Source: Octopus sinensis (lineage: Eukaryota). Taken from it: a stretch of 64,000 nt of DNA. Positions 51,722 to 58,696 of this stretch are shown piece by piece. The translations under genes and the position numbers were made by a program. Every line of letters starts with the position of its first letter. Within the stretch, counting starts at the first letter, position 1. Below the pieces are notes generated by a model. That model was not told the DNA's origin, did not search any database, and saw only the letters and a list, made by a program, of their open reading frames with translations. The stretch is taken from contig NC_043026.1 in the NCBI RefSeq assembly GCF_006345805.1, positions 4,402,001 through 4,466,000 on the forward strand, in the 5' to 3' direction.

Positions 51722-54700
51722 ATGGAAAAGAGTGAGAAAATTATAGAAATAGATAGAGACCGTATCACTGTGATATCTGTGGTCAATCATTCGCTGCAAA
51801 TAGTCAATTAATTACTCACAAACGTATCCATACAGGGGAAAAGCCATATCACTGTGATATCTGTGGCAAATCTTTCTTTGAAAATGGTAAATTAACTGTA
51901 CACAGGCGTATTCATACAGGAGAGAAGCCATATGACTGTGATATCTGTGGTAAATCTTTCATCCGCAATCATGACGTAACTAGACATAAACGTATTCATT
52001 CAGGCGAAAGACCGTATCACTGTGATATCTGTGGTAAATCATTCTCACAAAATAGTGACTTAACTAAACAGACGTCTTCATTCAGGCGAAAGACCGTATC
52101 ACTGTGATATCTGTGGTAAATCATTCTCACAAAATAGTGACTTAACTAAACACAGACGTCTTCATTCAGGAGAGAGACCATATCACTGTGATATCTGTGG
52201 TAAATCATTCTCACAAAATAGTGACTTAACTAAACAGACGTCTTCATTCAGGCGAAAGACCGTATCACTGTGATATCTGTGGTAAATCATTCTCACAAAA
52301 TAGTGACTTAACTAAACACAGACGTCTTCATTCAGGAGAGAGACCAAATCACTGTGATATCTGTGGTAAATCATTCTCACAAAATAGTGACTTAACTAAA
52401 CAGACGTCTTCATTCAGGCGAAAGACCGTATCACTGTGATATCTGTGGTAAATCATTCTCACAAAATAGTGACTTAACTAAACACAGACGTCTTCATTCA
52501 GGAGAGAGACCATATCACTGTGATATCTGTGGTAAATCATTCTCACAAAATAGTGACTTAACTAAACAGACGTCTTCATTCAGGCGAAAGACCGTATCAC
52601 TGTGATATCTGTGGTAAATCATTCTCACAAAATAGTGACTTAACTAAACACAGACGTCTTCATTCAGGCGAAAGACCGTATCACTGTGATATCTGTGGTA
52701 AATCATTCTCACAAAATAGTGACTTAACTAAACACAGACGTCTTCATTCAGGCGAAAGACCGTATCACTGTGATATCTGTGGTAAATCATTCTCACAAAA
52801 TAGTGACTTAACTAAACAGACGTCTTCATTCAGGCGAAAGACCGTATCACTGTGATATCTGTGGTAAATCATTCTCACAAAATAGTGACTTAACTAAACA
52901 CAGACGTCTTCATTCAGGAGAGAGACCATATCACTGTGATATCTGTGGTAAATCATTCTCACAAAGTAGTGACTTAACTAAACACAGACGTCTTCATTCA
53001 GGAGAGAGACCATATCACTCTGATATCTGTGGTCAATCATTCTCACAAAATAGTGACTTAACTAAACACAGACGTCTTCATTCAGGCGAAAGACCGTATC
53101 ACTGTGATATCTGTGGTAAATCATTCTCACAAAATAGTGACTTAACTAAACACAGACGTCTTCATTCAGGCGAAAGACCGTATCACTGTGATATCTGTGC
53201 TAAATCATTCTCACAAAATAGTGACTTAACTAAACACAGACGTCTTCATTCAGGCGAAAGACCGTATCACTGTGATATCTGTGGTAAATCATTCTCACAA
53301 AATAGTGACTTAACTAAACACAGACGTCTTCATTCAGGAGAGAGACCATATCACTGTGATATCTGTGGTAAATCATTCTCACAAAATAGTGACTTAACTA
53401 AACACAGACGTCTTCATTCAGGAGAGAGACCATATCACTGTGATATCTGTGTAAATCATTCTCACAAAGTAGTGACTTAACTAAACACAGACGTCTTCAT
53501 TCAGGAGAGAGACCATATCACTCTGATATCTGTGGTCAATCATTCTCACAAAATAGTGACTTAACTAAACACAGACGTCTTCATTCAGGCGAAAGACCGT
53601 ATCACTGTGATATCTGTGGTAAATCATTCTCACAAAATAGTGACTTAACTAAACACAGACGTCTTCATTCAGGCGAAAGACCGTATCACTGTGATATCTG
53701 TGCTAAATCATTCTCACAAAATAGTGACTTAACTAAACACAGACGTCTTCATTCAGGCGAAAGACCGTATCACTGTGATATCTGTGGTAAATCATTCTCA
53801 CAAAATAGTGACTTAACTAAACACAGACGTCTTCATTCAGGAGAGAGACCATATCACTGTGATATCTGTGGTAAATCATTCTCACAAAATAGTGACTTAA
53901 CTAAACACAGACGTCTTCATTCAGGAGAGAGACCATATCACTGTGATATCTGTGGTAAATCATTCTCACAAAATAGTGACTTAACTAAACAGACGTCTTC
54001 ATTCAGGCGAAAGACCATATCACTGTGATATCTGTGGTAAATCATTCTCCCAAAATAGTGACTTAACTAAACACAGACGTCTTCATTCAGGAGAGAGACC
54101 ATATCACTGTGATATCTGTGGTAAATCATTCTCACAAAATAGTGACTTAACTAAACAAACGTCTTCATTCAGGCGAAAGACCGTATCACTGTGATATCTG
54201 TGGTAAATCATTCTCACAAAATAGTGACTTAACTAAACACAGACGTCTTCATTCAGGAGAGAGACCATATCACTGTGATATCTGTGGTAAATCATTCTCA
54301 CAAAATAGTGACTTAACTAAACACAGACGTCTTCATTCAGGAGAGAGACCATATCACTGTGATATCTGTGGTAAATCATTCTCACAAAATAGTGACTTAA
54401 CTAAACAGACGTCTTCATTCAGGCGAAAGACCGTATCACTGTGATATCTGTGGTAAATCATTCTCACAAAATAGTGACTTAACTAAACACAGACGTCTTC
54501 ATTCAGGAGAGAGACCATATCACTGTGATATCTGTGGTAAATCATTCTCACAAAATAGTGACTTAACTAAACACAGACGTCTTCATTCAGGCGAAAGACC
54601 GTATCACTGTGAATCTGTGGTAAATCATTCTCACAAAATAGTGACTTAACTAAACACAGACGTCTTCATTCAGGCGAAAGACCGTATCACTGTGATATCT

Positions 54701-57700: not shown

Positions 57701-58696
57701 AAATCATTCTCACAAAATAGTGACTTAACTAAACACAGACGTCTTCATTCAGGAGAGAGACCATATCACTGTGATATCTGTGGTCAATCATTCTCACAAA
57801 ATAGTGACTTAACTAAACACAGACGTCTTCATTCAGGCGAAAGACCGTATCACTGTGATATCTGTGGTAAATCATTCTCACAAAATAGTGACTTAACTAA
57901 ACACAGACGTCTTCATTCAGGCGAAAGACCGTATCACTGTGATATCTGTGGTAAATCATTCTCACAAAATAGTGACTTAACTAAACACAGACGTCTTCAT
58001 TCAGGAGAGAGACCATATCACTGTGATATCTGTGGTAAATCATTCTCACAAAATAGTGACTTAACTAAACACAGACGTCTTCATACAGGAGAGAGACCAT
58101 ATCACTGTGATATCTGTGGTAAATCATTCTCACAAAATAGTGACTTAACTAAACACAGACGTCTTCATTCAGGCGAAAGACCGTATCACTGTGATATCTG
58201 TGGTAAATCATTCTCACAAAATAGTGACTTAACTAAACACAGACGTCTTCATTCAGGCGAAAGACCGTATCACTGTGATATCTGTGGTAAATCATTCTCA
58301 CAAAATAGTGACTTAACTAAACACAGACGTCTTCATTCAGGAGAGAGACCATATCACTGTGATATCTGTGGTAAATCATTCTCACAAAATAGTGACTTAA
58401 CTAAACACAGACGTCTTCATTCAGGAGAGAGACCATATCACTGTGATATCTGTGGTAAATCATTCTCACAAAATAGTGACTTAACTAAACGCAGACGTCT
58501 TCATTCAGGAGAGAGACCATATCACTGTGATATCTGTGGTCAATCATTCTCTAAAAGTTATAGCGTAACTTCACACAAACGTACTCATACAGGAGAGAAG
58601 CCATATTATTGTAATGTCTGTGGTAAATCATTCACTAAATGTAGTAATTTAACTGCACACAAATGTATTCAGAGAGAAGAGAAAGGAAAAGACTAA
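51722..58696 (+). pseudogene. ZNF-C: about 80 C2H2 fingers, about 78 near-identical ([28 protein letters not shown]), frameshifted; effectively an 84/82-bp minisatellite
   Basis: The ATG at 51722 (MEKSEK...) is out of frame with the fingers and a TAG at 51754 precedes finger 1 in the finger frame. About 20 units lack 2 bp. The terminal ~12 fingers are open to TAA at 58694-58696 but have no in-frame ATG. Confidence 0.85.

Follow-up and report, generated by a model that had tools for sequence, protein, structure and literature searches.

A zinc-finger array in Octopus sinensis that probably turned minisatellite-like after its gene died

Some 80 almost identical zinc fingers stand head to tail at one locus of Octopus sinensis, and they raise the question of whether they form one giant gene or tandem DNA that has outlived its gene. 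We analysed the 64,000-nucleotide stretch that holds them, which we call the window (NCBI RefSeq assembly GCF_006345805.1, contig NC_043026.1, positions 4,402,001 to 4,466,000 of the forward strand); all positions below count from its first base. The window is AT-rich DNA with a cluster of zinc-finger genes of the HCDICGKSF type. Albertin et al. are said to have reported in 2015 about 1,800 octopus C2H2 zinc-finger genes, in clusters. Our analysis indicates that the locus is probably a young, dead C2H2 zinc-finger gene of the octopus type, the interior of whose array is now a minisatellite-like tandem array with higher-order repeats. Its parent family consists of clustered, apparently single-exon genes with a MEKSEK leader.

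Organization of the array

Tandem Repeats Finder (TRF) located a single array (51757-58633, period 84, 82.4 copies, 94% matches), which was cut at the conserved anchor CACTGTGATATC into 82 units. Units 4-81 (52018-58522) are 78 copies of one finger, out of about 83 units in total; units 1-3, unit 82 and one last finger, which ends at the TAA at 58694-58696, are diverged. The core finger has 28 residues, and all core units encode the helix QNSDLTK, except for an N>S change in three block copies. The linker reads HSGERPY in the core and HTGEKPY in the flanking fingers, and the array has the TGEKP-like seven-residue linker and the 28-residue (84-bp) periodicity of C2H2 poly-zinc-finger proteins. 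In the terminal open reading frame (ORF) of 349 amino acids (aa), the C-x2-C-x12-H-x3-H finger motif was recognised by the Pfam family profile (zf-C2H2, PF00096, E = 4.7e-78, 12 matched stretches; zf-H2C2_2, E = 1.4e-90).

Core units carry one of two linkers, GGCGAAAGACCG (GGC type, n = 43) or GGAGAGAGACCA (GGA type, n = 35), which have three differences, all synonymous. In addition, 21 units lack the dinucleotide CA and read AAACAGACG (or AAACAAACG in two of the 21) in place of AAACACAGACG. A preliminary description of this DNA, made from its letters alone, had counted about 78 units for the same finger, about 20 of them short of 2 bp, and two alternating synonymous linker types. Unit splitting bears out the counts and the two linker types, but the alternation is not strict (46 runs of linker type against 39.6 expected from shuffles, P = 0.09). 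The array is composed as follows.

51757-52017, plus strand: the 5' edge, units 1-3, which are diverged C2H2 fingers, each unique and with 13-18 differences from the core consensus
52018-58522, plus strand: homogeneous core of 78 units (35 A, 22 B, 21 C), from TRF and unit splitting
Type A, 35 units: 84 bp, linker GGAGAGAGACCA (GGA type)
Type B, 22 units: 84 bp, linker GGCGAAAGACCG (GGC type)
Type C, 21 units: 82 bp, CA lost, linker GGCGAAAGACCG (GGC type)
Starts of C units, plus strand, from unit splitting: 52018, 52184, 52350, 52516, 52766, 53939, 54105, 54355, 54688, 55023, 55522, 55687, 55936, 56102, 56352, 56520, 56602, 56851, 57017, 57099, 57601
58523-58696, plus strand: two diverged terminal fingers and the natural stop TAA (58694-58696), with AATAAA downstream at 58768-58773

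The diverged unit 3 at the 5' edge already has the GGCGAAAGACCG linker. Exactly identical units number 21 within type A, 15 within C and 10 within B. Substitution divergence within a type is lowest for C (0.23%, the most uniform class), followed by A (0.8%) and B (1.2%); this low divergence would fit a derived variant of recent spread. C units can be told by the junction sequences AACTAAACAGACGTC...GGCGAAAG, with CTTAACTAAACAGACGTCTTCATTCAGGCGA diagnostic for C and CACAGACG for B; further diagnostic k-mers are the 1-nt-deleted CTAACACAGACG and AAAGACGTAT, together with a k-mer that contains GGGTAGAGACC.

The 82-bp unit follows one linker and is copied with its neighbours

If the missing CA were an error, it should be found on both linker types. 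We found it on the GGC linker in 21 of 21 cases and never on GGA, whereas the intact units are divided into 22 GGC and 35 GGA (Fisher p = 2.2e-7). GGA and GGC units are identical for 53 nt before the deletion site and for 16 nt after it. The linker type upstream of the deletion showed no association with it (p = 0.44), so the linkage is with the linker 16 nt downstream inside the same unit; the preliminary description had placed that linker 15-20 bp on. Because the deletion occurs only with the GGC linker, random error is excluded, and since B and C units share an identical context, a context-driven error would not separate them. Within the core, an A unit directly follows 17 of the 21 C units.

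To trace the units independently of the deletion, we used rare substitution markers (35A>G; 5G>C with 19A>C; 17G>C; 30A>C; 54G>A; and 19A>C alone). These reappear in constant order and with constant unit spacing (offset permutation P = 0.004) and, together with the unit types, delimit the following higher-order blocks.

52018-52597, plus strand: run of 166-bp C-A dimers, units 4-10 being C A C A C A C (from unit types)
52932-53938, plus strand: 6-unit block of about 503 bp in two adjacent copies, units 15-20 and 21-26 (from rare markers)
53436-54436, plus strand: 12-unit block, units 21-32 (from rare markers including 30A>C and 54G>A)
54853-56017, plus strand: the 12-unit block again (units 38-51), its markers in unchanged order, with one extra C-A pair
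56184-57180, plus strand: 6-unit block of about 499 bp in two adjacent copies, units 54-59 and 60-65, each A, B (with 19A>C), C, A, C, C

Units 15-20 and 21-26 share the marker order 35A>G, then 5G>C with 19A>C, then 17G>C. The second 12-unit copy differs from the first by six short indels and one substitution, and C units stand at matching relative places in both (units 27/46, 29/48 and 32/51). One extra GA and one 1-nt deletion are the sole differences between units 54-59 and 60-65. The block pairs given by the markers are 15-20 with 21-26, 11-16 with 34-39, 24-32 with 43-51 (part of the match between 21-32 and 38-51) and 54-59 with 60-65. The variants are arranged as in satellite DNA, in repeated multi-unit blocks, which form three families marked by rare substitutions.

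Across these marker-defined copies, the state of the GGC unit, B or C, was concordant in 15 of 15 pairs, which has a random chance of about 3e-5. Such concordance means that the deletion is inherited with its neighbours when blocks are copied. Together with the restriction to GGC units and the uniformity of the C class, these results support the view of the preliminary description that the 82-bp unit is a genuine variant that was amplified. They also indicate that it is heritable and was multiplied along with adjacent units.

Two other origins of the deletion were considered. Independent, repeated slippage at CACA was rejected because GGA units would be affected too. Context-dependent base-calling error was rejected because the context of B and C is identical and the state is inherited in blocks.

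A third explanation accepts the 82-bp unit as real but holds that the number or positions of its copies, or the length of the array, are in part artefacts of assembly or polishing, including falsely duplicated or collapsed blocks. Almost 7 kb (6.9 kb) of near-identical units is hard to assemble, the block copies are near-identical in substitutions and differ mostly by error-like indels, and an indel cluster lies near the array centre. The copies are nevertheless mosaics rather than simple duplicates, as the extra C-A pair of the second 12-unit copy illustrates; units 11-16 match units 34-39 with different neighbours, and there are three separate block families. We regard this explanation as unlikely.

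Coding capacity of the array

We then asked whether the array could still encode a protein. The lesions that bear on this are the following.

51722-51756, plus strand: ATG (51722-51724) and short leader, in a different frame from the fingers, whose own frame is closed by a TAG at 51754-51756
53019-53021, 53522 and 54942, plus strand: zinc-ligand Cys>Ser (TGT>TCT) at the first zinc-binding Cys, recurring in block copies
57253-57255, plus strand: in-frame TAG in unit 66, GGAGAG changed to GGGTAG by substitution; the ORF restarts directly at 57256
58490, plus strand: zinc-ligand His>Arg (CAC>CGC) in unit 81, from the unit sequences

The leader is homologous to the MEKSEK leaders of four paralogs. 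Aligned with these, the array gene has 31 nt fewer between its ATG and the first Cys codon, and as a result the start codon and the fingers are in different frames; the frame opened by the ATG ends after 29 codons. A leader of 12 codons alone separates the ATG from the fingers. A single missing base near 51758 could explain this 5' defect. Along the array there are 28 frame changes, and each CA deletion leads to a TGA about 13 codons downstream. The longest stop-free stretch (349 aa, 57647-58693) is open to the natural stop and has no start codon; a scan of the finger frame found no ATG, GTG or TTG codon. With the out-of-frame ATG, the frame changes and the TAG at 57253, the locus lacks the continuous ORF of a functional gene. 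The TAG and the zinc-ligand substitutions, which add to the lesions of the preliminary description, remain once every indel is discounted.

Two ways around these lesions were examined and rejected. A splice acceptor at 51755-51756 that restores the frame has no pyrimidine tract, and the paralogs run straight from the ATG into the fingers. Coding in another frame or strand fails because all are closed: across the array the other five frames are closed and the minus strand has no ORF of at least 60 aa.

Short indels and the quality of the consensus

Besides the CA deletion, nine units (53436-56602) have a 1-nt deletion, and two units (54853 and 56434) have an extra GA. All but one of these short changes sit in runs of 2-3 bases or in GAGAGA. 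Seven of the nine 1-nt deletions are clustered.

54605-55851, plus strand: cluster of 1-nt deletions near the array centre (AAA>AA, CC>C, GG>G), probably consensus errors

Between block copies there are 10 indels and 1 substitution, as against 73 gaps and 206 mismatches between the segmental duplications of the window (Fisher 2e-5). Two comparable 1-nt losses (31767 and 31860) break the duplicated twin of an intact neighbouring gene. As judged from these patterns in the sequence, the scattered 1-nt indels most likely are consensus errors of the assembly in repeated DNA, in agreement with the preliminary description, which had taken those at 54.6-55.9 kb for read errors. Single-base losses in repeated arrays would be a weak spot of this consensus, and this matters for pseudogene calls across the family.

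These errors bring up the possibility that the locus is an intact giant zinc-finger gene of about 80 fingers, in which all indels, the 2-bp deletions and the 5' frame defect among them, would be errors of assembly or consensus. In its favour, 1-nt indels do occur in the repeated arrays of this assembly, short base or dinucleotide runs are the site of nearly all indels, and the last 349 aa are open up to the natural stop. This explanation would nevertheless have to account for a deletion that spares all 35 GGA units in spite of the shared 53 nt before and 16 nt after it, that is concordant in every block-copy pair, and that separates B from C within exactly the same context. It leaves the substitution TAG and the zinc-ligand changes in place even with all indels discounted, and in the collections that we searched no protein of any length was more than 55-72% identical to the array finger. 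We consider an intact giant gene highly improbable.

Several observations weigh against our reading of the locus as a dead gene with a still-changing array. The whole case rests on one assembly, in whose repeated arrays short indels clearly persist, and a 1-nt error could be what puts the start codon out of frame. The two units with an extra GA demonstrate that dinucleotide runs at this locus can also change by 2 bp, for whatever reason. Polishing with short reads could shift a real deletion-plus-GGC unit onto other GGC units, so that the count of 21 C units may be wrong even with the variant real. The string of unit types on its own gives modest support for block structure (P = 0.035). Finally, gene conversion without net growth would spread C units too, and growth and homogenisation are inseparable here.

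A parent gene in a cluster of paralogs

To place the array gene among its relatives, we compared it with the rest of the window. A tandem segmental duplication (16663-37833 matching 37832-51709 at 94-98% identity) ends directly before it.

48350-51709, plus strand: upstream region of the array gene, at the end of duplication copy 2, with a copy at 34641-37833 (92-98% identity)

Just 13 bp separate the end of copy 2 from the array gene, whose upstream region has an orphan copy at 37054-37833. The junction at 37833 falls at a point equivalent to 13 bp before the array gene's ATG. Duplication copy 1 is about 7 kb longer, owing to extra sequence at about 23.2-30.9 kb. The DNA upstream of the array does not code and has its homologues upstream of the paralogs; the intact paralogs at 44074-45570, 40845-41969 and 20315-21439 have about 73% identity there and the same MEKSEK leader. 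The locus thus has disabling lesions together with intact close paralogs nearby that share its flanking sequence, as an unprocessed pseudogene does.

The cluster itself offers milder versions of both events. An intact 495-aa paralog (44074-45570, minus strand) contains five consecutive 84-bp units that are identical in DNA (44394-44813). Its twin (30976-32341, minus strand) has four such units and is broken by the 1-nt losses at 31767 and 31860, which lie in short base runs, and by a TCA>TAA substitution stop. This pair indicates that finger amplification and gene death are both common in the cluster, and the array is an extreme case of the two.

Protein searches placed the finger in the same family. 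A 69-aa ORF with a frameshift tail matched only Octopus and Argonauta proteins: zinc-finger proteins of Octopus vulgaris, O. sinensis and O. bimaculoides, with one Argonauta protein ranked below them, all at 59-72% identity, none of them with the frameshift tail and none above 72%. The nearest named proteins are short Octopus zinc-finger proteins. Searches with the terminal 349-aa ORF and with an intact neighbour were dominated by vertebrate zinc-finger proteins of at most 60% identity, and HMMER against 1.84 billion representatives found nothing above 55% identity, the best matches being chimeric multi-gene vertebrate models. Exact look-up of four window proteins in the protein collection returned no entry, and exact-pattern scans of metagenome and prokaryote genome collections gave 0 matches.

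We also considered whether the array is retained for a non-coding role, through small or long RNAs that act on paralogous zinc-finger genes, in chromatin organisation, or as a donor of finger units; the preliminary description had suggested a reservoir for gene conversion. The array is large and highly homogeneous, has kept a paralog-like upstream region and has an AATAAA after its stop codon. Recent amplification alone accounts for the homogeneity, however, and we found no positive evidence for a role. A 29-mer specific to the array has 77 matches in the window, every one inside the array and none in the other zinc-finger arrays, which are only about 74-75% identical to the amplified unit, so there is no evidence for the reservoir either. 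A retained role therefore seems very unlikely to us.

How the array may have changed

Zinc-finger arrays change finger number by out-of-register exchange. Here, one 84-bp finger unit in two synonymous linker forms fills 78 of the roughly 83 units. A B-type unit lost CA and became the 82-bp C unit, in which a stop follows the frame shift within about 13 codons. This unit is found at 21 positions, inside recurring blocks, namely 166-bp C-A dimers and blocks of about 500 bp (6 units) and about 1.0-1.2 kb. On our preferred reading, a dead gene with a minisatellite-like array, repeated out-of-register exchange or slippage between near-identical units would have produced these blocks, which comprise 2, 6 and about 12 units. 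The frame would not have been under selection meanwhile, and the array would have grown or been homogenised as non-coding DNA after the death of the gene.

The copying of a frameshifted unit in blocks implies that expansion or homogenisation went on after the frame was lost. The preliminary description had proposed that the array kept expanding after losing its coding capacity; continued change of this kind stands, but growth proper cannot be told from conversion. The locus is probably a real and clean example of a coding repeat that runs away after the death of its gene, so far in a single assembly.

Comparison with known repeat systems

The closest known parallel is PRDM9, described as a 'coding minisatellite' of tandem 84-bp C2H2 units in which copy number and order change by out-of-register exchange and conversion (PMC3890296, PMC4874674). 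The octopus array resembles it in its 84-bp finger units, in the very high DNA identity between units and in the mode of change. PRDM9, in contrast, has about 6-20 fingers, which are in frame and vary mainly at the DNA-contact residues (PMC3890296, PMC4874674), whereas the octopus array has about 78 units with one identical recognition helix, 21 of them frameshifted, and its variants are frameshifts, linker changes and ligand losses. It also has no KRAB, SSXRD or PR/SET part, only the leader of 12 codons. The array works like the PRDM9 minisatellite but is not a PRDM9 relative by any feature tested, whether frame, contact residues or domains.

Decayed arrays are known in the same family. In PRDM7 of ruminants, horse and primates, and in dog PRDM9, 84-bp finger repeats persist with stops and frameshifts (PMC4874674), as they do here. 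The published accounts concern short arrays that gather disruptive mutations (PMC4874674). In the octopus it is the disrupted unit that was multiplied, and it now has 21 copies in higher-order blocks; the array exceeds the neighbouring intact paralogs several-fold in length. Among the lineage-specific C2H2 clusters of octopuses, near-identical poly-finger genes of the HCDICGKSF type, tandem segmental duplication and intact or pseudogene neighbours offer a further likeness (PMC12513265, PMC10547256). These papers make no mention of an approximately 78-fold amplification of a single finger, nor of pseudogenes or frameshifted units, and in the octopus C2H2 paper that was searched for them satellites are absent too.

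The array shares with the higher-order repeats of satellites its head-to-tail non-coding units, the variants in repeated multi-unit blocks and the very low divergence within classes (PMC12692304, PMC8122249). It differs in being a single 6.9-kb array at one euchromatic-looking gene locus, with its unit confined, within the window, to this array; for this reason 'satellite', the term chosen in the preliminary description, goes beyond what the window shows. According to one review, virtually any sequence can give rise to tandem repeats and satellites, and the origins named in the available part of it are mainly transposable elements and other repeats (PMC12692304). A documented step from a zinc-finger array to a satellite is rare, and our literature search found no satellite derived from a zinc-finger gene.

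If true, our reading would provide a dated, internally marked case of higher-order repeats building from a coding repeat, and a natural gauge of exchange rates in octopus zinc-finger clusters. It would also be a warning for annotation, in that finger repeats may look perfect over about 7 kb and yet not code. A bolder version, in which a coding finger array is caught turning into a self-propagating satellite seed, with an 82/84-bp higher-order unit that is hypervariable among individuals and has maybe spread to other loci, is in our opinion a long shot. It may also be, as speculation, that selection favoured rows of identical fingers in the ancestor and in the paralog with five of them, as readers of a simple trinucleotide repeat; by the finger recognition code the helix QNSDLTK would presumably read approximately GCA. 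Such selection would explain why amplification set in while the gene still worked and went out of control once it had died.

Further features of the window

The intact 371-aa zinc-finger genes with a MEKSEK leader form a pair, at 20315-21439 and 40845-41969 (both minus strand), one in each copy of the segmental duplication, where the DNA is about 96% identical. A degenerate zinc-finger array at 62685-63941 (plus strand) has several substitution stops (for example GGTGAGTAACCA) and is about 74% identical to the amplified unit. Beside the cluster, an unbroken orphan ORF of 1811 aa runs from an ATG at 3832-9264 (plus strand); it had no Pfam family, no match among PDB sequences and no exact entry in the protein collection.

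Two further repeats accompany these genes. Tandem repeats of 52-53 bp (consensus ...GAGATTTGGCTGCTATTTCTAGC...) occur at 49900-50072, 50829-51127, 60540-60754, 36117-36289 and 37057-37250; they flank the array gene on both sides and are also found in the duplicated copy of its upstream region. A segment repeated at 13062-13544, 16612-16953 and 37733-38107 (minus strand) has a common ORF-like translation (...GVWEARRLHQAQSDLAMFLRLDALPNA...) with no match in Pfam and is probably a dispersed element, one copy of which starts exactly at the beginning of each copy of the segmental duplication.

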